Positions 284 to 17,007 of a stretch of DNA of 17,007 bases are shown here, piece by piece. Position 1 is the stretch's first letter; every line of letters begins with the position of its first letter. A model generated the notes under the pieces. The model was not told the origin of the DNA and ran no database searches. It saw nothing but the letters and a program-made list of their open reading frames with translations. The DNA lies in contig NW_021824986.1 of the NCBI RefSeq assembly GCF_006345805.1, positions 1 through 17,007 of the forward strand, in the 5' to 3' direction. The translations under genes and the position numbers were made by a program. This DNA comes from Octopus sinensis. Taxonomy: Eukaryota.

Positions 284-459
284 CTAACAATAAAAAATAA
301 TTGTGACCGGTTTTATTTTGGACCAGGTTTTATTTTGGACCGACATGCTCAGATTATAATAAAATTATATTTGTTTTAAATTTCTCCACTAAAAAAAAGA
401 TAAAAATATAAAATTAATAAAAAACCTTAATATTTATTTAATTAATTAACGCGTGCATA

Positions 460-848
460 ATGGTTCTAGTGGATTTAACCAGAGAAGAATTGAAAATAAT
501 CAGTGATATTAAGAATAGTATATTAATTGATTCCAATATGGACAAAAGAGAAAAGTATCGCCTTAAAAAATCGCAAATTTTTTTAATTTTGTTGACGAAA
601 AGGCATATTTTGTAAAGAATAACAAAAATCTTCGTTTTTTTGTTCGGAAGAGAGAGAACTTAAGCTAAAAACTATCAAAGTAAGCTAATATATTGAATTT
701 AAAGCTATTACATAATGAAAATCATTTTGGGCGTGATCTGATGTTAAGCCTATTAAGAAATAAAATTTACTGCGTCAAACGTTCTGAAATCTTCGATGTA
801 ATTAAATCATGTGTTGAGTGCCTTTTTGTTACTAATAAGAGAACATAA
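460..848 (+). pseudogene. Truncated Ginger-like integrase: N-terminal region plus HHCC zinc-binding motif, no catalytic core
   Basis: MVLVDLTREEL...DKREKYRLKK...LRFFCSEERELKLKTIK | 25-nt GT-AG intron 680-704 | LLHNENHFGRDLM...KSCVEC...KRT*. It needs two single-base corrections in homopolymer runs (~570, ~640) and is clearly homologous to the ORF at 15954-16241. Confidence 0.8.
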
Positions 849-891
849 CTTTAACTTAAATTAGGATTTTAGTGTTAGGGTTAAAATTTTG

Positions 892-1458
892 TTTAGGGTT
901 AAGGTTAAAATGTTTAGCGTTAAGGAGAAAATGTTTAGGGTTAGGGTTAAAAATTTGTTTAGGGTTAAGGTTAAAATTTTTAGGGTTAGGGTTAAAATGT
1001 TTAGGGTTAAGGAGAAAATGTTTAGCGTTAAGGAGAAAATGTTTAGGGTTAAGGAGAAAATGTTTAGCGTTAAGGAGAAAATGTTTAGGGTTAGGGTTAA
1101 AATGTTTAGGGTTAAGGAGAAAATGTTTAGGGTTAGGGTTAAAAATTTGTTTAGGGTTAAGGTTAAAATTTTTAGGGTTAGGGTTAAAATGTTTAGGGTT
1201 AGGGTTAAAAAATTGTTTAGGGTTAAGGTTAAAATGTTTAGGGTTAGGGTTAAAATGTTTAGGGTTAGGGTTAAAAAATTGTTTAGGGTTAAGGTTAAAA
1301 TGTTTAAGGTTAGGGTTAAAAATTTGTTTAGGGTTAAGGTTAAAATTTTTAGGGTTAGGGTTAAAATGTTTAGGGTTAGGGTTAAAAAATTGTTTAGGGT
1401 TAAGGTTAAAATGTTTAGGGTTAAGGAGAAAATGTTTAGGGTTAGGGTTGAAATTTTG
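892..1458 (+). repeat. Telomere-derived minisatellite: 26 units of 21 or 24 nt, consensus TTTAGGGTTAGGGTTAAAATG
   Basis: Manual parsing gives 19 x 21-nt and 7 x 24-nt units (567 bp). Degenerate TTAGGG-like flanks extend roughly 860-1620. Confidence 0.95.
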
Positions 1459-1927
1459 TTAGTTGAGATTAAGATTTTTATAATTAAAATTAAATTAAGT
1501 TTTTTATCGTTTGGACAACTATTAAAAATAGGGGTTTTAAATTAAATTGAAAATTAGGGTGTTTTAGAATTAGGATTTTGGGTGTTAGGGCTATTATAGA
1601 ATGTATATGTGTTAGGGTTATATTTTTAAAATTTTTAATTAATAGAATTATATTTAGTTTTTAATTTTTTTAGAATGGAAGACCAATTTTTAAATAATAT
1701 CGTAACGGCAACGCTGTAATTATCAAATTTGTTGATTGGTTGGGTTGTGCATACTTCCATTTTTTAAAAAACTAAATGAAATCAAGAAAAAACTATACAA
1801 AAGTATAATTAACATTAACTAATATATTTTTAGTGGAATAAAATTTTTATTATTGATTTTTTTTCTCGGTCCAAAATAAAACCTGGTCCAAAAAAAAACC
1901 TGTGACAATAATTATTAATGAGAATAC

Positions 1928-2789: not shown

Positions 2790-3556
2790 TAGGACACCTT
2801 AGATGTGGCGAGCCATCCGCGCTACCCATTCTATTGTGTTACACACTTGTCAAAATTGGCCTAGATTTAAAACCTGTTGTTTAAATTACTTTTCATTCTT
2901 ATTTTTAAATTCTTTACTGTTTTCAAAAAATATAAAATAAAACTTAGGTCCAAAATTATAAAATAAAGCTTTTCAAATAGAAGAAATTAGATATGCTTTC
3001 TTCGAATTAGTAGCTCAGGCAAAGCAAAATTTGAAATAAATATCGATTACGTCAAAAATATACTTGATACCACGATTCAGACAAGGGACTCAAATCTATC
3101 ATATTTATCTGGTAACCTTCTCTTGGAGCTTTTGCTTTAATCTGTATCAAAGAAATATGAGCTTTTAATGGCTGACATTGAGCACAGTCTCTAGATTCAG
3201 CACATACTTTTTGGATAATTGATTTCTTTATACTAAAAAAATAATTATATCAGACTATTCTTTCATTTTGTTTACTTCATAATGCGTTTTCAAAAGTGAA
3301 TTTTAACACATAGATTTCATAGTTTCCAATTTATTTTTAGCAATTACAATTTTTTGTTCCATAATTGGTTTTAACTCAGAACCTTTTAGTAAAAAACATT
3401 TTTTGTTATTTAGAAATCTTGTCTTTTTCATTTCAGTTAAACTTCCATCAATCGTGTCGCTTTCAAATAAGAAACTATGTTTTTGTACTATATAATAATT
3501 AATACTAAAATTTTAAGCAGCATCTTTGACAAAACAAAAACATCTGAATATCATAA
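2790..3556 (-). pseudogene. Decayed Ginger/TDD-like integrase related to element B (14355-15948)
   Basis: With frameshifts it reads YKNIVSYLK..TIDGSLTEMKKTRFL...CAQCQPLKAHISLIQIKAKAPREGYQINMIDLS...KYIFDVIDIY...LFYNFGP...ENSKEFKN, colinear with element B (QPLKTK...AKEPRER YQVDLVDL...VIDIY...GPP...DNGTEF). No TIRs were found. Confidence 0.7.
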
Positions 3557-3659
3557 TCTAAATATGGGTTAAAATACACTGCGAATTCGAATTGGAAAAA
3601 ATAGAGTAGGTGGAAACCCTCTTTTTGGGAAAAACCTTGCTTTTGGGAAAATATTTTTA

Positions 3660-3860
3660 ACAAAAATATCAGGAAACAGTCACTGCAGCTTCGCCCCGAA
3701 CTGAAACCACATTGCTGCGTGAGCAGAACGTTCTTCTCTTCGGTCAGGAAATCGAGGCGCTTTGCCATGATTTTTTCCATTAACCTTGAGATGGTTGGGA
3801 TAAGGCTTATTGGAGGGTAGCTACTAGCTCGATTCGTCGGCTTTCCAGGTTTCTTGATCA
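3660..3860 (-). mobile_element. Non-LTR retrotransposon reverse transcriptase fragment (Jockey/I-like, RT domains 0-1)
   Basis: IKKPGKPTNRASSYPPISLIPTISRLMEKIMAKRL...QQCGFSSGRSCSD matches the PKPGK..P.SYRPISL...K..E...Q.GFR..RS motif. Confidence 0.82.
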
Positions 3861-3861
3861 A

Positions 3862-4009
3862 GAAATATTTTCCCAGAGGTGAGGCACTATATTTCCTACT
3901 GTATGATAATCATTTTTTACTATAGAGCACTATGTAACCATTGTATGGGAAGCAGAAAAACTGTTTGTCATTTGTCAACCTAGGGCAGTAAAATTCTCAA
4001 TGTCAGAAG
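3862..4009 (+). mobile_element. R4/Dong-like non-LTR fragment (zinc-knuckle region)
   Basis: About 125 bp is nearly identical to 6210-6341. It translates with frameshifts as EALYFLL.D...ALCNHCM...KTVCH.ST. Confidence 0.65.
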
Positions 4010-4690: not shown

Positions 4691-5542
4691 TTATTCATAA
4701 CGTCTAAATCCAAAATGTAGGTGATCGTCTTTGTATGCATCATAAAAATCGTATTTCATTTGGGTCGACAAGTTCTTAAAATATTTAAAAACTAGATCAG
4801 TTGCGTTTGTTTGATGGGAAATTTCCTGGAGCCATGATCTCCCATTTTCTGAAATTCCATAAACCTTGATCAAATCATTGATAAATTCATCAAGTTTGTC
4901 AAGCAATATGATTTTGTAGTCGATATATTGTGGGGAACATAAATCAGTCATTGAGGTCCAGTGTTCGTTCAATTTGGCTTTTTTTCGAGATTGAATTATT
5001 AAATAACCGACAAATTGTTCGAACGTTACAAATTTTTCAGGATTACCAGTTATGGCTTTTCGAACATCCTGAACAAAGTAAGGTGACTTCAAAGTAATCT
5101 TTTTGAATCGGATGAATTTGTCTAAGTATGCGGAAACTATACGTTCGACTGGATGTCTCACTATTAAAATTTTTTGAACGCCTTCCATCTCGTTTATTGA
5201 ATGTATTTTAGGTTTTATTTGATAATTCGCATTTATAAATGGGAGATCGTGAATTTCACTTTTTCTGAATTTATAACAATTTGTGATGTTGTTCTCAGCA
5301 CAGTAAGTTATTACGAACCATTTATACATTGTTGTTGACCCAACTTTAGGGATTTTACAATAGAATAATTTTTGTTTATCGATAAAGTAAAAATGAGTGT
5401 TTTCTTTGAAAGATTCATTATTTGTGGGATTTCTAAATGTTTTTACATTCACGTCGCATTCGAATTTTGAAAACAAAATGAAGAAAAACAACAACAGGAG
5501 TAAAATACATGTTTTGTATAAACAATGCTTTCGTGTCAGCAT
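4691..5542 (-). CDS. Golgi-type carbohydrate sulfotransferase (Sulfotransfer_2 / HNK-1ST, CHST8-14 family), 283 aa, intronless
   Basis: Intact ORF with an N-terminal type II membrane anchor (CILLLLLFFFILF), 5'-PAPS motif YCKIPKVGSTT, 3'-PAPS motif IVRHPVERIVSAY, the HW..M..LC segment and C-terminal Y..D...FGF. Confidence 0.92.
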   Translation of the reverse strand: MLTRKHCLYKTCILLLLLFFFILFSKFECDVNVKTFRNPTNNESFKENTHFYFIDKQKLFYCKIPKVGSTTMYKWFVITYCAENNITNCYKFRKSEIHDLPFINANYQIKPKIHSINEMEGVQKILIVRHPVERIVSAYLDKFIRFKKITLKSPYFVQDVRKAITGNPEKFVTFEQFVGYLIIQSRKKAKLNEHWTSMTDLCSPQYIDYKIILLDKLDEFINDLIKVYGISENGRSWLQEISHQTNATDLVFKYFKNLSTQMKYDFYDAYKDDHLHFGFRRYE

Positions 5543-6094
5543 TTAATTAGAATGAATTTTATTTAATAGTTTATTAGCAGCTTCATTAAACTTTAAAGTA
5601 TTATATAGTTTAAAAATAATCTTTTTTATTATTTAACAGTTCAAAACTCGATTTTTATTAAAAACAAAAATATGGAATTTTGTGAGGACTGGGGACCACA
5701 AATACGCCTTATTTTCGGCGGCTTAGGTTTAGAAGATATGAAATTTTATTGTGAAATGCATTTATTGTTTTTTTGAGGGTCCCCATGTTCCAGAATTATG
5801 AAGAAATATTGGCTTCACAAAAGTATCATATAAGAAGTAGGACGAGAGGATGTGTAGTTGGAAGTTCAAATTCTCACATTGGGAGGTTGTGGGAGAGGGG
5901 TGTGGAGATGATCGACTGGGAGATAAGCTTGTTAAGGAAGTTCGGCTGAGGAAGGGATTAGTTATTCAGGAACAGATTTTTGGGGATCCTAGTAAGCATA
6001 GGACGTTGGCTTGGAAAAATTAATTCAATATTTTTATTCTTCACTATAATAATGTTGTCAATCTATTTGAAATTCATGTTTTTTAAAAAGCATG

Positions 6095-6570
6095 TTGAAG
6101 AAATCACGAATTTCAATTTCTGATTCAGCCAAATGTCTAAACGATCAGAATGTTGATGTAAAAACTTCAAAGGGGTGGATTTGGAAAAGGAATGTTTCCT
6201 CAGAAGTAAGCACTATATTGCCTACTGTAAGATAAGTATTTTTACTTTTAACCAATAGAGCACTATGTAACCATTGTATGTGAAGCAGAAAAACTGTTTG
6301 TCATTTTTCAACCCAGGGCAGTAAAATCCTCAAGTCAGAAGGCATAACGAAGTCTTGAGATGTATTTATTTGCACCTATGTAGGAATTATGGAATCAGCA
6401 AAGTAACAAAATTGAAAGGGTACTCAGTCTATCAATCCTATCAACACAAAATGTTGAATTACGAGAATTCAGTGTAACAAGCCTGATATATTTGTGTATG
6501 ACAAAATAAGAAACGAAATTATCATCATAAAAGTGGGAGTCACTTCCCAGGACCACCTGAAGCAGCAGCA
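6095..6570 (+). mobile_element. R4/Dong-like non-LTR retrotransposon fragment: CCHC knuckle plus restriction-like endonuclease, decayed
   Basis: ...ALYCLL*DK...LCNHCM..KTVCH.ST...RRHNEVLRCIYLHLCRNYGISK...NKPDIFVYDKIRNEIIIIKVGVTSQD matches the CxxC..H / RHN / PD..(D/E)xG motifs of REL-clade elements. Confidence 0.8.
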
Positions 6571-6956: not shown

Positions 6957-9900
6957 CTATTTATCAGGCAGTTCAAATGGCTCAGGTGGCTGTGGCTCAC
7001 CGTCTTCCTCAGTAGTCGAAATCTTGGTCGCGGGGACTACACAATCAATCCAATCAAAATACTCGGCATAAACTCAACATAACACTCATCTCCATCAGGA
7101 TCAGTGTCCTTGGCAATAAATATATATCCTCCAGCAGTCACATTCTTCACGAGGTTATATCGAGTATCACTCGCAGATATATACTCTCTCTGCCAATACA
7201 CTCCCCAACTCACCTGCTGTGGTAAAACTCGTGCTGGGTTCTTTAAAAGACTAAACCCCTCACTAGACTCGTCCATCTTTGTTTCCTCCTCAACTGTAGT
7301 ACCCACTTCGGTCTCTGACATTACATTAAAGAGAAACCACCTTTCTGGACTTGATCCACATTCTCCTTTGACAGCCCCTTCGCCTGTTTGTTAGAATAAC
7401 ACATTACTTGGAGTCTCTCAATCTTACGACGTTGGAAACGAGAACCCACTGACCTGGAAGCACTAGACTTGCCTCGAGTCTTCTTTTCCACTACGAGAGG
7501 AATGTAGGCAAATTTGGAAGGTGGTATGTTGGACAGAATATTGACTGCCGGCATCTACCAATATATCCCTCTCTAATGAACCTTCAAGTCCTCGTTGAGT
7601 ATGACTACTCCTGTTGGGGAGAAGGCCAATGACAGAGTGAGAGAGAGTGGAAACCAGTACCAGAACTGCTGGAACACCAACAACCCCACAATAGCCTTCA
7701 TATTCTCAAGTCCACTTTCATTTTCTAGTGCAATTGTGACATTCCCACTCCCTGTGACTCTTTATTCACAATTATAACCCGCATAGGCTATTCCTAGCCC
7801 AATTATTGCTCCAAACTTATTAACCACTCCTTCATGCTTGTCTGATATAATCTGAGTAACCATTTTTGTATATTTTTTCTATATTTATACATATAAACAG
7901 TACATGTGGAGAACTTTCCCCAGTTTCTTCAATTAATACCATTCCCCCCGCAATGAAGGCAGCCTGTCTTACATAACTGGCCTTATCATGCCACAACGAC
8001 TCCAATATTTTACATACAAACTAAAAATAAACATATTAGTAGACAAACCTGGTCGCCCGTGCCAGCATAGGCAATTCCCAAGGCCATAGCTGATCCATAC
8101 CGAACATGAGGATTATAACTATCCACCAATGACTTAACTATGCTCAAACAGACTTTAGGAACTCTACATTGAATCAACACATATACCTATAAAGGACAAA
8201 TCCGAGGGATATTGCTGCTGCTCGTCTCACATCATCACTCACATCAGTGACAATCATTTTGAGTAGTTTGCGGACTGCTGTGTCATCCCCAGTGCCACAA
8301 TAGGCCATTGCCAGTGCATAAATCCCCATCCATCGATGAATAGGGTCTTGGTGGGCAACCAATACTTTAATGTGCTCATCTGCCTCACTCCCTCTTCCAT
8401 ATAATATCAGTGCCACTCCAACAGCAATCCCTCGTAGTGTCTTTTCGTGCTTATTTACTGCTGCAATCTAAAAAAGTGAGACTATTACAATACAGAGAGC
8501 AGTGTGGTTATTATATACTCATTCTGAGTCCCAACTAGTATCATTCCTACTGAAATAGCAGCTGCTTCCCCCACGACTGAATCAGAGTGGATTGGTCCAA
8601 GCAGTGACTCCACAACTTCCTCATTCCCACTACCCAATCCAGCCAAACCAATAGCCAATGCTGCTCCATGTCGCACAGTCTATTTATATCAACACATTCT
8701 CACAGTTGACTGATTTTCATTAGAATATTTACACAGATAATCCATAATATCACCACCCCGTGCACAATATATGAATCCTGTCAATCATTGTTATAAACTA
8801 CCCAACCCAGTGAGTAAAGTCCTCCCCCAATCGCATACTGAGAGGTACTGACACTATCCTTGGGCAAATAGGCGTCAAGGACAGTCATTGCATTGCCTTC
8901 ATTGCTCTAAATGATGTCAACCCTCCTAATAAACCTTATGAATAACCCCAAGAGAACCAATAGCAATAAAACGAGACCAATTACTAAATCGAGACACCCA
9001 ATCACTCAAATGTCTAATAATCAGTACATAATAACCCCACCTGAACATATAATCACATGTCGAGCCATAATTAATAAATGAATTTGCTATTATAATGGCA
9101 GTGTTACACACCGAGTCAATTGAACGGACCTATGCTATACAAAATAATATACCTGTGCGAATTGAAGTAGTGTTTGTGATTCATCACGACTGTTGTGTGC
9201 AAGAAACTGCAACTGAAACTTGGCTGGGAGAGAACCATCAAGTATTTTACATATTCTATCAATTGGGCTATTTTCTACCAATTCTTGCACTAATTTGAAC
9301 TCAATACCATCAACAGTGTTCTTCAACTTGTCAACCACAGCAGCAGAGGTCTTGTAGGTTACACAATCGTAGAGATCAAAGGCCAACTGATAAGCCAAGG
9401 CAATATTATTCTATTAATTTACTCACAAAGTCACAAACATGTTCAGAAGTCAAAGAAGCCAACAGATTAGCAAGAAATTCAATATCGTTCAATTTAACTG
9501 CACACTTGAATTAATTTGAATAAAAATTCAAAACTTTAAACACCAGAAAATAATTCTTTCTAGAAGATGCTAGAAGGATCTCAATGAATATTCTCAACGA
9601 GCGTTTAAAAAACTCTGCATCATCACATGTAGTTAATAAAATATGATAAACATAATCAAATGGCATTTCCTACATTACAAAATAATTAAAAAATAAATAC
9701 TACACTGTCATCGTAGTATTTAATAGCCATTTCCAGCATAGACAGATCCCGACACTCCACAGAAATGCCCAAAGCCTTCAAATATATTAAAAAATAAACA
9801 ACCTGATGCAATTTACAGTCAACAAGACACCGTTCAAACATAATATCAACCACCAACTTTAATTTAGACATTATTGGTGCAGTAGAGGCATCATTTCCAT

Positions 9901-10415
9901 CTTTTTTGAGGGCAGAATACATGTCAATACATTTTCCTAAGGAAGGGATATTCAGTTCTGGCCTACCTGCTATGGTCTCGGAGTACAAAGAACATTCCCC
10001 CACATTAAACAAGTCCCCAGCCATGAAAGCATAGGAGACGGCATCATCAAAGGACTGGAGATGGTAGTGAATCTAAAGATCAAAGCAAATTGGTTACTTT
10101 TGAGCATATTAAAGCTGACAATTGTCGGTATGGAAAGTCTTGTAGGTCAGCTAGTTTTTCACTTTTATTAACTTTATTTAAAGATACATTTCTGTGATAG
10201 ATACTGCCATTTCGTACCAGAATGTGCTAGAAAGTGAGTCTAATTTTTGTAGGGCGATTTTCTGTGGATTATTAAGTGTTAACTAAGGTTGAATTGATAC
10301 CTTCAGTTCGTAGTCATCTTCTTCTAATAATGATAATATTCCTTCTATAAAAGAATTAGTAAATGATAATTATTTAAATATTAAATATCTAATCACAACC
10401 AGAAGTGGATAACAT
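6957..10415 (-). CDS. PSMD1: 26S proteasome regulatory subunit RPN2 (PSMD1), about 925 aa, 25 exons
   Basis: Manual splicing of 24 GT-AG introns (55,39,26,25,30,27,34,30,28,23,27,28,29,24,26,23,28,25,27,27,24,26,24,26 nt) gives a 2778-nt frame. It runs from [16 protein letters not shown] through the PC repeats ([23 protein letters not shown]) and FWYWFPL, NPARVLP to [13 protein letters not shown]. Confidence 0.95.
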
Positions 10416-11330: not shown

Positions 11331-13762
11331 ATTCTTTAGTTCTTTGTCGTTATTTTTATCCTGTTCCTAATTTTTTGTCTTATTTAAATTTGTGTGGATT
11401 CTAAAATATGCATTTTTTATTAGATTTTAAATTTGGGAGGTTCTGGCTTGTTTAAGTAACTTAACTTTCACCACATCAGGGGAAAAGATACTGATTAAAA
11501 ACCAAAGGAAGAATCCTTTAGTGAATAACTTATTTCCAGTTTATTTTATACATCCATTCGGGATGGCTTTCTGAAATTACGAATCAGAATCATGAACAAA
11601 TATATCTATGTTATTTTTATTACAAATAGTACAACTGCTGAAGTTATTATTTGCTTTGTGGGCATTTATGTGTTGACTTCTATGCTTGACTTATATAAAT
11701 AAAAGTATTTATTGGCTTTGGAAATTAAACTGTGAATCTGTTCTGCAGAAAGAAATATATAGAATTAATAAACACAGTCTATATAAATTGACAGTCAAAC
11801 ATATTTTCCTAAAACTGGTAAAGGCAACCAGACCAAACGTGGCTAAATCAAGATTACATAAAAACGTACAGTGTCCGACAAAATAAATTGGATTTGCTTT
11901 GATTTGACTTTATTCTTAAATACTAACTGTAGATTATAATGTTGATTGACTGCTACTTCGAGATAAATAATAATTGCATTGTATTGACAATTCATGTATA
12001 TTCCAGACTAACGAAATGTAGTTGCTTTATTTTCGATTGTTTCAAAAATATAAAAACTTACTTTCAACAATAAATCTCTCAAAAACAATTCCATAACTCA
12101 GAGAACACCCACAAAGTGAAGCCAAATAAAACAAGTCTCATTTAGTTTTTGCTACTTAATCGGCGAAATGAAATCAAAAATCGTAACGATAAAAATATTA
12201 TCCAAAGAGAAAATTTTATGTTGTAAATTCAGAAAATTTTATGTTGTAAATTCTAAGGACAACCTGTAAATCGAAAAAAGCCCAGTTTGCCAATATTAAG
12301 AGAACACATTTTTGTGGAAATATATAGTTAATAAAATTTTTTTAATATTATTGATTATTGAGAAAACAAATAAAGTTACGAATAGGCATGTTAATAAAAT
12401 TTATTTTAATACTCGTTTTTAAAATTTATTAGACTGATCAATTAAAGTGTTCAATTTAGGAATTGTATACTTTACTATAAAATGTGATTTTTTTTAGCAT
12501 ATTTAATTTTTTTTTCAATTTAGAATAATACGTACAAAATGTCAATTTCAGAAAAATGTTAAATGTGATTTAAGAACTCGACTCTCTTTCCATCTGTTAT
12601 AAACTTTCAACCAGCACTGTGGTCTATCTATTTAATATATTCTAAATCTATAATGCATTATTGGGAAATTTCAAACTGCGCTGATCTGGATGTGATTAAA
12701 CTTTCAGTGGGCAGCTTAAGAGATCTAAAAACAGGCATAAAAGTATAACGCTATATTATTTTTATTCCAGCAGATAACAAACTGCATCTATTTAATGAGT
12801 TGTCATGTACATGTTCTTCTAAATCAGGGGTCGGTAGGATTTTTGTCTTCGCGCGCCAAAATTTTATTTTTGTATGCCAAACGAGAAAAAATCCTTATCG
12901 GTCGCAAAAATAACGATATATAAGAATCCTCTTGGCTGAGACAGAGAATCTCATTTCGTTTGCAATCGTGAACGGTAACGCACAAATTATCTGTTTTGCT
13001 TAAAACGAACCTTTCCAGGGCAACGTTTGCAGATTTATTAGTTAGAAATGATTACATAGAAGTGAATTTATTTTAGTCATTATCTGACTAGTTGCTAAAT
13101 GTAATATATTTTTAAGATTTGAATTGGTCATCCTCGTTCTTAGACAATTTTTACATTATTCATTTGGAGAATAACTGATGACATAAAAATGTGATTCCAA
13201 ATATACAAGCCATTTTCTTTGCATTGTCGATTTTTGACACATACAAAATTTTCGTAGAAGCTCAAAATATCTAATTTGATTTAAGTATAGTGTCGCATTA
13301 AATTTCAAGTAATTCCATTTAATAAAAACCTGGTACTGTCTCAATTTAAACATCAAATGGAATTGAAAAAATGTTGAAAAGATTTTGAAAAACCTACAAA
13401 ATTATATGTCACCGGTTTTTGCTGGGACCCGGCATCTCCTTGGACCGCCCTAAAAATCGACTAAATCGCTTTATTTATATCTAAAATTATTAAATAGTTA
13501 AAGTTTAACCCTAAAATGCTGATAGATTCCAATTTACTGAAATTTCTTTCTTGTACAAAACCAGCATACTCCAACATTCGTTATTAACGCCGTTGAACTT
13601 TAAATATTTAATTGATATCTGGATTACCAGTCGAAAAAAATGAAAACTATTTATATTTTTTTTAAATAAAAATTAAATAAAAAAACACAAAAAGTATTAT
13701 TCCGTGATAAAAATACATTTTTATTTTTGTCGCGTGATAAAATCTCAACTTTATCCCAAAAG

Positions 13763-13991
13763 CTAACCTAACTTCGACCTTATCGCTAACCCTATCCCTC
13801 ACCTTATCCCTATCCCTAACCCCAACTTTATCCCTAACCTTATCCCTAACCCTAATCCCAACCTTATCCCTAACCCTAATCCCAACCTTATCCCTAACCT
13901 TATCCCTAACCTTATCATTATCCCTAACCCCAACCTTATCCCTAACTCTAACCTTATCCCTATCCCTAACCCCAACCTATCCTTAACCCTT
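13763..13991 (-). repeat. Telomere-like array: TTAGGG variants, mainly the 12-mer AGGGATAAGGTT interspersed with GGGTTA
   Basis: The plus strand is a run of CCCTAA/CCCTAT/CCTTAT hexamers. Confidence 0.92.
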
Positions 13992-14099
13992 ATTTTAGCA
14001 CAAGCCTTATTTTTTATAACAAAAACATTAATCAATTTTATAAAGTCTCGCAATATTTGTTCCTTTTACGACAATTCAAATCAAAATCAATTCATATTT

Positions 14100-14349
14100 C
14101 TCTGGCAATAACTTTATATTTTTTCGTATCAATTTGATCATATACTGGATATCATTTTTTCTCCTGCTTTCGTTAGAGTCTCGTATGTTGATAACAAATT
14201 TTTTGCAATATTTTTATCATCAGTTACTTCATTTTCAACAAATTGAATTTCAGCATCAGCATCTTCTCCAGAATTTGAATCATTCACTTCCGCATATCGG
14301 CTTGCAATATTTCAGAACGACTAACACCATAGATCCTTGTCTTCAGATG
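14100..14349 (-). pseudogene. 3' piece of the element A2 integrase gene (end of the HH region fused to an acidic C-terminal segment; DDE core absent)
   Basis: After removing element B and one ACTAA copy, the frame continues NHFERDRMIS|HLKTRIYGVSRSEILQ. It then shifts into RYAEVNDSNSGEDADAEIQFVENE...TLTKAGEKMI with no DxD/E core. Confidence 0.6.
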
Positions 14350-14354
14350 ACTAA

Positions 14355-15948
14355 TGTCACGCGCCATAAATGAAACGCGTGCCTAAAGTGAAACGCTGTG
14401 ACCTTGAATTTAACCTTCAATTAAGCTCTTGACAATTATCAAGTCAATATTAAAGATATTAAAGATGATTGCGCACTTTGAGATAATATTATCGAAATGA
14501 GATTTGCCAACATTGTAAAGGATGATCAGGAGTATAAGAATATTCTTGATTTTTAAAAATAATACAATACCAGAAGATTTTTCAAGACTAAAAAGATTTC
14601 GTTTTCTCAAAAAAAGTAGAATTTCGTAATCTGGAGGTACTATTAAATCTAATGATAGGTGTGCTATATTATAAACAATCTGATGAAACAAAATATTGGT
14701 AATTGCCTCAAATGATTTCGAATCCATGAAACTGCATTGTGAAAGGATTCATTCAATTTATCACTATGGATTTAATAAATGGGAGTATTGCAAAATAATT
14801 TTTGCATAATCAATCGAAACATAATTAGGGATGTAATATCATCATGCCACAAATGTCAGCGAAGTCAGCCCTTAAAGACAAAATATCCACTAGTCAACAT
14901 AGTAGCCAAAGAACCTCGAGAACGGTTCATTCAATAGCTTATTTTTTAGCTATCAGTTGATTTAGTCGATCTTTCGTTTTATGCAGATATAAATGATTCC
15001 TATAAATATCTTATGAATGTCATAGATATTTATTCAAATTTTGCTTTGCTAAAAAATAGAAATATAAAGAAGCAGTTACAGTTTCGGAATCATTGAAAAC
15101 TATATTTCTTTCCTATGGTCCACCAAAAATTCTGCAGTCTGACAACGGAACAGAATTTGTTAATTCAGAAATAACGTCATTATGTGAAGAATTTAAAATA
15201 ATTCATAAAAGGGGACGTCCAAGACATCCAGAATCACAGGGACAAGTGGAGCGTTGCAATCAAACCATTTGCAGATGGATTCAAAAAGAACTCACAGACA
15301 AACAGAAAAAATGGGTGGATGTGTTAGAAAAAATTGTATATCAGTACAATATTTCAATTCATTCTTCTATAAATATGTCACCATTTATGGCTTTTTTCCG
15401 AATAGAGGATATAACATTTCTTATTATATGATGATGAATTAATTGAAGAACATGAAAATCAACTATCATAAATGACAAATATCTTGAAAGAATGGAACGA
15501 AATTTTTCAAAAACATTGAAAGAAATTGCAATTGGAAATAATGTTTTGCTGAAAAAAGATTTTGATACAAATCAAAGGACGAAGAAGCGAAAATTAGAAT
15601 CTTTTTATCATCAACAAATCTTTACTGTTGAGATTTAATTTCAAATAATAGAGTTAAAATAAAAGATCAAGATGGAAATGAAAAAATAGTATTTAAATCA
15701 CAAGTTAAAAAATTTAGACAGGTAAATTTTCAGGTTAAAATATTTTTAATTTTTTGGTAATTTTAAAATGGCTAACCATTATTTAAATAAATTGTTAATC
15801 TTTCAAACGATAATAATAAAATTGGTTTCTCGGTTTTATTCCTGTTTTCATCAAAGGATTGTTAATTTTATTTTCGAGGTTTTTTGTGGTTTTCTCAAGG
15901 TTCACAGCGTTTCACTTTAGGCACGCGTTTCATCCATTGCGCGCGACA
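14355..15948 (+). mobile_element. Second Ginger/TDD-like family (element B), near full length, nested in A2
   Basis: 53/54-bp TIRs at 14355-14407 and 15895-15948, TGT...ACA ends, 5-bp TSD ACTAA at 14350-14354 and 15949-15953. Confidence 0.92.
14497..15760 (+). pseudogene. Gypsy-like (rve, KRBA2/SCAND3-type) integrase/transposase with HHCC and DDE core, frameshifted
   Basis: RIH..YHYG...CHKC, (R)YQVDLVDL, KILQSDNGTEF, GRPRHPESQGQVERCNQT, YN...H.S..MSPF. There are several frameshifts and two putative micro-introns (14637-14658, 22 nt; 14925-14949, 25 nt). Confidence 0.88.
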
Positions 15949-15953
15949 ACTAA

Positions 15954-16241
15954 TCATTCGATCTCTTTCAAAATGATTAGAATTATGCTCGGACTATTTT
16001 TAGAAAATACAACCAATACTTCAATCATTAGTAATTTTAGTTCTGCATCTTCAATACAAAAAAATCGTAGTTTTAGGCCATTTCTTCGTATATAAGCTTT
16101 TCCATCAGCAAAATAAAAGGTTTCTGCATGTTGTTTGACTTTATATCTCTCCTTCTTATCCAAAACTTCATCCAAATTCTGGAATTCTTTGTATTTTTTG
16201 ATTTTTGACAAGGTATCTCTAGTCAAAACCAGTAGACCCAT
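15954..16241 (-). pseudogene. 5' piece of the element A2 integrase gene
   Basis: MGLLVLTRDTL...LDKKERYKVKQHAETFYFADGKAY...LRFFCIEDAELKLLMIE | 26-nt intron 16019-15994 | SEHNSNHFERDRM. It aligns along its length with 460-848. Confidence 0.82.
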
Positions 16242-16537
16242 TTTTCACGTGGCAATTTAATTTTATAAAAGTAATATTCTTTTTTAAAAATAATTAATAA
16301 ATATGTGTTTATGACTGTTAATAAACTATTTTCAATATTTTTTATTTGAAAATACGCTTGCGGTCCCAGCAGATGCCGGGTCCCAGCAAAAACCGGTGAC
16401 ATTATATATAAGCATTTTACTCTTAAATCTATAAAACGTGATGAAAATTTCGATCTCAATTCCATAACTATGTTTGCATATTCCGGAACATCAGTCGGAT
16501 TCGTAGAAAGAAAAATTACACAACTTCAATTTAAAAA

Positions 16538-17007
16538 TTTTTTTTTTTTTTTTTTTAAAAAATTAAACTACTAAGTAAAGTCAACAAACTAATAAATTCT
16601 CCCAGCGAGACGGAGGGAACAGCTGTTGCCACGCATGACAGCCAGCAGGATCCTCTGAATGAGGAAAGTAAATTCCCTAGGGTCCTTGGACCGCGAAGAA
16701 CAAAGATGTCCCAATTTCTTTAGGGAAGTGAGGGTCCCGGAGCCAAAGACGCCGGAAGTCTCGACAACGATTGGCCAAAACCAAAAGTCATCCAACAAAG
16801 ACTGATATTTCCGGCACTTCGAAAGCTCAGCCTTATTAGCACGAGACCCAGCAAGAGAGGCCGATTCGTTGATGAAAGACTTTGAGAAGGTATCCACGCA
16901 AGTGGAATCCCAGACCAAAGGTCTCCCAGAATAAAACGAGAACAACGTAGAGCCGTCCGGCCTTTTCCCGTCACCACGGTCGAGACCCTTAGGCTCAAGG
17001 ACAGAAG
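16538..17007 (-). mobile_element. 3' end of a CRE/SLACS-like non-LTR retrotransposon (REL endonuclease, short 3' UTR, poly(A) tail)
   Basis: Open frame from the window edge: EPKGLDRGDGKRPDGSTL...LVWDSTCVDT...KCRKY...PIVVETSGVFG...QRILLAVMRGN, stop at 16589. A 19-nt T run at 16538-16556 is the poly(A) tail. The region is noticeably GC-richer than its flanks. Confidence 0.85.

Follow-up and report, generated by a model that had tools for sequence, protein, structure and literature searches.

Internal telomere-like arrays in two diverged Ginger2/TDD-like DNA transposons

RESULTS

Two DNA transposons, designated A1 and A2, in a 17,007-nucleotide stretch of DNA (contig NW_021824986.1, referred to as the window) each carry a minisatellite of telomere-like repeats between the transposase remnant and the 3' end. 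The two elements are colinear and deeply diverged, and the seven autonomous relatives examined outside this genome lack such arrays, one of them only probably. With modest confidence, we attribute the arrays to one telomere-like tract in the 3' untranslated region of an ancestral element, which would have been remodeled by replication slippage and spread passively by transposition.

Anatomy of elements A1 and A2

Element A1 occupies positions 302 to 1907 of the plus strand (1,606 bp). Its 42-nucleotide (nt) inverted ends, at 302 to 343 and 1866 to 1907, begin TGTGACCGGTTTT and TGTCACAGGTTTT and match at 39 of 42 nt. The 5' end has GGACC boxes at 320 to 324 and 337 to 341, the 3' end has GGTCC boxes at 1868 and 1885, and the element is flanked by the 5-bp target duplication ATAAT (297 to 301 and 1908 to 1912). 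A preliminary description of this DNA had the A1 3' end starting with ACCGG; its start is instead TGTCACAGG. Within these ends, the remnant of transposase exon 1 (460 to 679) contains two frameshifts, was read by three-frame translation, and can be aligned to its A2 counterpart. It is followed by a 25-nt GT...AG mini-intron (680 to 704), the excision of which gives gapless colinearity with the intronless proteins P0049 and P0090, and by the HHCC zinc-finger exon (705 to 848), which matches Pfam Integrase_H2C2 with 28.1 bits, above the cut-off of 25.5. A stop codon comes after this exon, and the DDE core is deleted beyond it. The telomere-like minisatellite, detected with Tandem Repeats Finder (TRF), spans 868 to 1454 and consists of about 27 units of 21 to 24 nt, such as TTTAGGGTTAGGGTTAAAATG. 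Further sense-strand TTAGGG motifs are scattered through the 3' subterminal region (1554 to 1620) at 1554, 1585, and 1612.

Element A2 (13407 to 16401) has its sense strand on the minus strand, as do all of its features given here, and measures 2,995 bp as found. A separate Ginger2-like element, C (14355 to 15948, plus strand), is nested within the A2 zinc-finger exon and splits A2, which had been overlooked previously. Without C and one duplication copy, A2 measures 1,396 bp and can be aligned to A1 end to end. In sense orientation, the 5' end repeat lies at 16360 to 16401 and the 3' end repeat lies at 13407 to 13448; counted as 43 nt (16360 to 16402 and 13406 to 13448), the ends are 95% complementary. 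The 5-bp target duplication, TTATA on the plus strand, is found at 13402 to 13406 and 16402 to 16406. The exon 1 remnant (16020 to 16241, within an open reading frame [ORF] at 15954 to 16241) can be aligned to that of A1, and the 26-nt GT...AG mini-intron (15994 to 16019) interrupts the same codon position as the A1 mini-intron. The A2 minisatellite (13777 to 13993) consists of units of 12, 18, or 36 nt, such as TTAGGGATAAGG.

Between the A2 zinc-finger remnant and the array lies a segment of about 360 bp (13994 to 14354) that matches the family profile weakly and colinearly over its acidic linker and C-terminal portion (3.3 bits, compared with at most 1.5 bits in 200 shuffles). A BLAST search for a C-terminal coding region in A2 was not significant (E value of 0.055), and we offer only as a suggestion that this segment is a decayed remnant of the coding sequence for these two parts. 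The putative stop codon was placed within 14028 to 14057 by manual alignment to P0049. If the match is real, the array would start in the 3' untranslated region, about 35 to 45 nt past the former stop codon.

Element C has 47-nt TGT...ACA ends that begin TGTCACGCGCC and are 91% complementary, together with the 5-bp duplication ACTAA. Its HHCC and DDE integrase is decayed but nearly full-length, matches Pfam rve and Integrase_H2C2, and has Ginger2 as its best reference group. The nearest named database proteins are those of amphipod-infecting microsporidia (Nosema granulosis, Dictyocoela, and Cucumispora; 41 to 53% identity). The top match overall is to P0001, an unnamed protein whose context is that of bacteria or phages; it is uninformative with regard to the array.

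Common architecture of A1 and A2

The order of parts is the same in both elements: end repeat, leader, N-terminal exon, GT...AG segment of 25 to 26 nt, HHCC exon, array, 330 to 410 bp of 3' sequence, and end repeat. The pattern TGTSACNG-N11-GACC occurs in the window at exactly the four A1 and A2 ends, against a chance expectation of 0.01, and GGACC boxes are present at end positions 19 to 23 and 36 to 40 in all four. The conceptual integrase N-termini are 44% identical over 110 amino acids (aa). Against the family profile, A1 scores 57.5 bits over profile positions 30 to 120 when exon 1 and the HHCC exon are taken together, and A2 scores 27 plus 27 bits, its exon 1 remnant covering positions 3 to 76 at 27.2 bits; the best of 200 shuffles reached 1.5 bits. 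These results bear out the common end architecture, the 5-bp target duplications, and the homologous but diverged integrase N-termini of the preliminary description. The flanking noncoding DNA of the two elements has diverged almost to saturation. Both retain only the N-terminus and the HHCC region and, since they lack a DDE core, both are non-autonomous.

Composition of the arrays

The A1 array (TRF periods of 21, 45, and 66) has a G:C ratio of 174:3 and contains 35 perfect TTAGGG hexamers, and the A2 array (periods of 12, 18, and 36) has a G:C ratio of 95:1 on the sense strand and contains 11. TTAGGG ranks joint first among the hexamers of the A1 array and third among those of the A2 array, and the 15-mer (TTAGGG)2TTA occurs 11 times in A1. 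By TRF, units match one another at 84 to 88% within A1 and at 73 to 79% within A2, which fits ongoing turnover in each array. Across the window, 38 of 41 TTAGGG motifs and 13 of 13 CCCTAA motifs fall inside A1 and A2, leaving three and none, respectively, outside. From this composition, the arrays are almost certainly telomere-derived.

In both elements, the G-rich strand is the integrase sense strand, and the array ends 411 bp (A1) or 328 bp (A2) from the 3' end repeat. The earlier observation of a TTAGGG-derived array a few hundred base pairs inside the 3' end thus stands, as does that of differing higher-order units (21 to 24 nt in A1; 12, 18, or 36 nt in A2). The arrays also share the variant dimer TTAGGG-[T/A]TAAGG. 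Since A1 and A2 are colinear and their arrays are alike in position, orientation, and dimer, inheritance of one array followed by independent remodeling is plausible. Of the proposal that a conserved family component had expanded independently in each lineage, separate remodeling therefore remains plausible, and conservation across the family does not hold for relatives outside this genome, as described below.

It had also been suggested that the arrays could form G-quadruplexes. Neither array contains a match to the canonical motif (G3+N1-7, four times), so this idea was not upheld; relaxed motifs with 12-nt loops number 3 in A1 and 12 in A2.

Assignment to the Ginger2/TDD group

An exhaustive profile search with the A1 and A2 N-termini recovered 40 proteins; the A2 N-terminus gave no matches when proteins were searched through a word index, and a scan of viral contigs for relatives found none. 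The best family proteins (P0049, P0050, and P0054) are stand-alone transposases of about 430 to 450 aa. These three and P0090 measure 413 to 452 aa and have an N-terminal region, HHCC and DDE regions, and a C-terminal domain. Two complete elements recovered from other samples, L002 (2,272 bp) and L128 (2,590 bp), have a Gypsy-integrase-type protein as their sole ORF.

Reference zinc-finger and DDE sequences were those that Bao et al. 2010 list in their Additional file 1. By BLASTP, the best reference group for every family member and for the C integrase was Ginger2/TDD (102 to 129 bits), with lower scores for Gypsy (72 to 100 bits) and Ginger1 (66 to 99 bits); the control protein, P0095, had Gypsy as its best group. 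In a neighbor-joining tree, the family forms a clade beside the metazoan Ginger2 references and inside the Ginger2 and TDD group, a weak placement with bootstrap values of 6 to 26%. A core clade of P0049, P0050, P0076, P0079, and P0090 received 100% bootstrap.

TGT...ACA ends with inverted repeats are present in A1, A2, C, L002, and L128, and a 5-bp duplication flanks three of three window elements. The hallmarks of Ginger2/TDD elements in the literature are TGT...ACA ends and 4- to 5-bp duplications (5 bp in TDD-4/5 and 4 bp in metazoan Ginger2), and the elements were filed as Ginger2/TDD-like because they have both. This assignment is supported by the agreement of ends, duplications, integrase-only relatives, and best reference scores, and is in line with the Ginger/TDD-like identity given to them earlier. 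Like known Ginger2/TDD elements, they are of the cut-and-paste type, with a Gypsy-type integrase only, neither reverse transcriptase nor long terminal repeats, inverted repeats of tens of base pairs, and 5-bp duplications as in TDD-4/5. They differ in that described metazoan Ginger2 elements duplicate 4 bp and that, in the tree, the new clade stands apart as a weakly supported sister group. Ginger1 is defined by a 4-bp CCGG or CCGT duplication, YPYY and GPY/F motifs, and extra Ulp1, OTU, or PHD domains. Membership in Ginger1 was rejected, given that the duplications are 5 bp and AT-rich and that Ginger1 references score below Ginger2.

The elements appear to represent a poorly described Ginger2/TDD-related clade whose conserved ends have TGTSRCCGG tips and a pair of GGACC boxes at a 17-bp spacing. 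Members of the clade were found in microsporidia, marine plankton, and soil eukaryotes, and one further source is presumably a cephalopod assembly.

Arrays are absent from most relatives

A survey of metagenome and genome contigs covered about 118 loci with integrase relatives, and telomere-like arrays were found at only two, L048 and L054. The complete element L002 (Logan SRR26596599) has ends that read TGTCACCGTCC and an intronless ORF and carries boxes at end positions 19 to 23 and 36 to 40 as in A1 and A2; these read GGACC, except that box 1 of the right end is CGACC. The 384-bp 3' region of L002 contains no telomere-like array. In the complete element L128 (encoding P0054), the tips, TGTCGCCGGTTTTT, nearly match those of A2, TGTCACCGGTTTTT, and the 828 bp of 3' sequence likewise contain no array. 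The duplications flanking L002 and L128 are mismatched, from which no conclusion is drawn because short-read Logan contigs may be chimeric at repeats.

No telomere-like array was found downstream of the transposase gene in L127 (P0079), L129 (P0080), or L005 (P0093). L004 (P0049), the sequence of which stops about 55 nt past the stop codon in an apparent end box, probably lacks one as well. L126 (P0050) is also without a telomere-like array and has instead a GT-rich minisatellite with 28- and 87-nt periods on the sense strand of its 3' region (2140 to 2341), which hints at a tendency of such elements to harbor tandem repeats with a G-rich strand in their 3' regions. In all, seven autonomous relatives outside this genome lack the array, L004 only probably, and L002 and L128 do so even though they are complete. 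By the refuting condition set out in the preliminary description, the array is thus not, among relatives outside this genome, the conserved family component that it had been proposed to be.

L048 and L054 are paralogues with 84% identity that belong to an unrelated lineage and come from a metagenome of soil or rhizosphere origin. The L048 array (998 to 1103) has a 21-nt unit, TAGGGTTAGGGTTAGAACGAG, made up of two telomeric repeats and a 7-nt spacer, with the G strand in sense. The L054 array (913 to 1091) consists of TAGGGTTAGAA units followed by their inverted complement, forming a G-strand/C-strand palindrome. In both loci, the array occupies an intron that separates the DDE core from the C-terminal domain. 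Five relatives with about 70% nucleotide identity to this pair (L047, L049, L050, L056, and L063) are continuous at that site, with neither intron nor array, and it follows that such arrays come and go within lineages. The intron may have arisen from an inserted foldback-like element. Taken together, the lack of arrays in relatives and the gain elsewhere in L048 and L054 indicate that arrays are acquired in particular lineages, at differing positions, and are not a hallmark of the family.

Some additional features of these loci were recorded. In L002, a TTAAG-rich stretch of the 3' region resembles a decayed array by eye and was not relied upon. At 63 to 121 of the same locus, the terminal 12 nt recur in inverted orientation directly after the 5' end and create a 59-nt palindrome around the two GGACC boxes, which may be a real structure or an assembly artifact. 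L048 has a 70-nt hairpin at 1126 to 1198, after its array. In L127, P0079 lies on a 1.29-Mb contig (VCDQ01000492.1, NCBI GCA_006345805.1), with candidate ends TGTCACCGTCTTGAAGGGACC 172 nt before the start codon. TTAGGG-containing repeats near P0079 were rejected as a candidate array, since they are part of another transposon's ends. We take this assembly to be that of Octopus sinensis; cephalopods host dicyemids.

DISCUSSION

Origin of the arrays

We envisage A1 and A2 as anciently diverged, internally deleted copies of a cut-and-paste lineage long resident in a host with ultra-short introns. In their common ancestor, a short interstitial telomeric tract would have joined the 3' untranslated region just past the transposase stop codon. 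The likeliest route of entry is the repair of a break by telomerase or with filler DNA, as in vertebrate interstitial telomeric sequences; telomerase-mediated insertion of TTAGGG at breaks is documented (PMC7215372, PMC8537989). The tract would then have expanded and been remodeled in each sublineage by replication slippage and unequal exchange, giving units of 21 to 24 nt in A1 and 12 to 18 nt in A2. Transposition, driven by the TGT...ACA ends with their pair of GGACC boxes at a 17-bp spacing, the probable transposase binding sites, would carry the array as a passenger, each event seeding a new interstitial telomere-like site. The anatomy of the elements, their colinearity, the telomere-like composition of the arrays, and the lack of arrays in outside relatives are observed directly; the single origin, the repair route, and the passenger status are inferences.

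Several observations weigh against this account. The array is still TTAGGG-like in both A1 and A2 despite near-saturated flanks and N-termini that are only 44% identical, so selection is possible. A second Ginger2-like lineage, that of L048 and L054, independently has a 21-nt array with the G strand in sense, and sense-strand TTAGGG motifs are scattered through the 3' subterminal regions of both A1 and A2. In addition, the evidence from the source genome consists of A1 and A2 only, and a TTAGGG telomere in the host is presumed.

The array could instead be a selected cis-acting module, in which (TTAGGG)2 motifs at a spacing of about two helical turns recruit a host protein of the Myb/TRF type or a UUAGGG-rich 3' untranslated region works in the transcript. 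The benefit might be expression, a shield from silencing, nuclear positioning, or protection of excised DNA. Retention of the array in two deeply diverged copies, the parallel gain in L048 and L054 of a 21-nt unit of two telomeric repeats plus spacer, and the sense orientation of the G strand in every case all speak for selection, and interstitial telomeric tracts are known to be bound by shelterin proteins, with effects on transcription (review PMC6410037). A module of this kind is nonetheless unlikely in our view: all seven autonomous relatives examined lack the array (L004 probably), two of them as complete elements, and its position differs by lineage, being the 3' untranslated region in one and an intron in the other. 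With only two independent gains, moreover, the agreement in orientation is not significant, and the window copies, both of which are dead, demonstrate no benefit.

Separate capture in A1 and A2, by gap-repair filler DNA at the internal deletions or by subtelomeric recombination, would make the likeness of the arrays a reflection of the host telomere sequence rather than of common descent. The A1 array does begin at a deletion junction, about 20 bp past the zinc-finger exon, and L048 and L054 show that independent gain occurs. The A2 array, however, lies off the deletion junction, 360 bp further on, past the possible C-terminal coding remnant, and the two arrays have in common their position relative to the 3' end, their orientation, and the TTAGGG-[T/A]TAAGG dimer; we regard separate capture as quite improbable. 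It is very improbable that the arrays are ordinary G-rich minisatellites resembling TTAGGG by chance, or that the host has a different telomere repeat. The TTAGGG telomere of the host is a presumption, and L126 does have a nontelomeric, GT-rich 3' minisatellite. On the other side stand the 11 copies of the (TTAGGG)2TTA 15-mer in A1, the rank of TTAGGG among the commonest hexamers in both arrays, and the near absence of the motif from the rest of the window. TTAGGG is also the usual telomere repeat of metazoans. In its broadest form, a functional interpretation would hold that Ginger2/TDD-like transposons repeatedly gain and keep arrays of paired telomeric repeats, which recruit telomere proteins or yield TERRA-like transcripts that aid expression, protection, or targeting, and that, in compact parasite genomes of this kind, many of the interstitial telomeric sites stem from these transposons as a main source. 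We consider this broad form quite doubtful.

Relation to known systems

The ciliate TBE1 and Tec elements are DNA transposons whose inverted ends have tips made of telomeric repeats. A likeness to TBE elements had been raised previously and does not extend to A1 and A2, in which the tips are TGT...ACA, the array is internal and single-sided, and no terminus is telomeric. Telomere-associated Penelope-like retroelements (Athena, Coprina, and a Mycosphaerella family) also bear the host telomeric repeat on a mobile element (PMC4522978). These are retroelements with repeats at the 3' terminus that prime on chromosome ends, whereas A1 and A2 are DNA transposons with the array 330 to 410 bp inside. 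Because the A1 and A2 arrays are internal, the comparison with both groups is one of theme and not of mechanism.

Interstitial telomeric sequences at breaks (PMC7215372, PMC8537989, PMC6410037) resemble the A1 and A2 arrays in being internal, degenerate tracts of telomere-like hexamers prone to expansion by slippage. They differ in that the A1 and A2 tracts reside in a mobile element, have a higher-order unit of 12 to 24 nt, and would be copied to new sites by transposition. Short telomerase-inserted sequences are near-perfect runs of hexamers at a break, recognized by comparison with an empty orthologous site; in their present form, the A1 and A2 arrays are degenerate higher-order repeats. 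Among DNA transposons with internal tandem repeats, non-autonomous elements often hold minisatellites between their ends (PMC6947457); the telomeric makeup of the unit in A1 and A2 is unusual in this company.

No description of telomere-like arrays in Ginger elements was found in full-text literature searches, in agreement with the preliminary description, which knew of none, and the words telomere, TTAGGG, tandem, and minisatellite are all absent from the text of Bao et al. 2010. Transposition has been mentioned as a mere possibility for the source of interstitial telomeric sites (review PMC6410037). If passive spread by transposition is correct, A1 and A2 would show clearly, at the sequence level, how a DNA transposon relocates telomere-like repeats within a genome. 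They would then help to explain how compact parasite genomes come by their interstitial telomeric sites, and would mark these as fragile or protein-binding sites that a mobile element has spread.

Host and other features of the window

The window is eukaryotic and AT-rich (32% GC overall). It contains a multi-exon PSMD1/Rpn2 proteasome gene on the minus strand at about 7000 to 10000 (E value of 7.5e-46 against the human protein), with introns of 23, 25, 26, and 28 nt. Among animals, reports of such short introns are confined to myxobolid myxozoans and to Dicyema, a dicyemid (PMC13644364), and GC content is 29.1% in Henneguya salminicola (PMC13644364) and 36.7% in Dicyema japonicum. The introns of 23 to 28 nt and the low GC content make it probable that the host is a myxobolid myxozoan or a dicyemid, the myxobolid being the better guess. 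The A1 and A2 mini-introns are of the same size as the host introns, and P0049, P0050, and P0090, which come from other samples, are intronless at that site. The mini-intron looks like one gained by a DNA transposon in an ultra-short-intron host, and a transposase-gene intron that matches the host intron size bears on the origin of introns in such genomes.

Scans of the window against Rfam and for tRNA genes gave no hits. A carbohydrate sulfotransferase gene without introns (4691 to 5542, minus strand; Pfam Sulfotransfer_2, E value of 2e-28) is flanked by 88-nt direct repeats at 3913 to 4000 and 6246 to 6333 that are 91% identical. Direct repeats of 78 nt at 2066 to 2143 and 2193 to 2270, 90% identical, each contain paired GGGGACCAC boxes, and an extra GGGGACCAC box is found at 5691; these repeats look like the subterminal repeats of yet another transposon. 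A reverse-transcriptase fragment at 3505 to 3861 on the minus strand matches Pfam RVT_1 with an E value of 9.5e-06, below the curated cut-off. An ORF of 118 aa at 16589 to 16945, also on the minus strand, has no Pfam match and resembles the C-terminal part of retroelement proteins.

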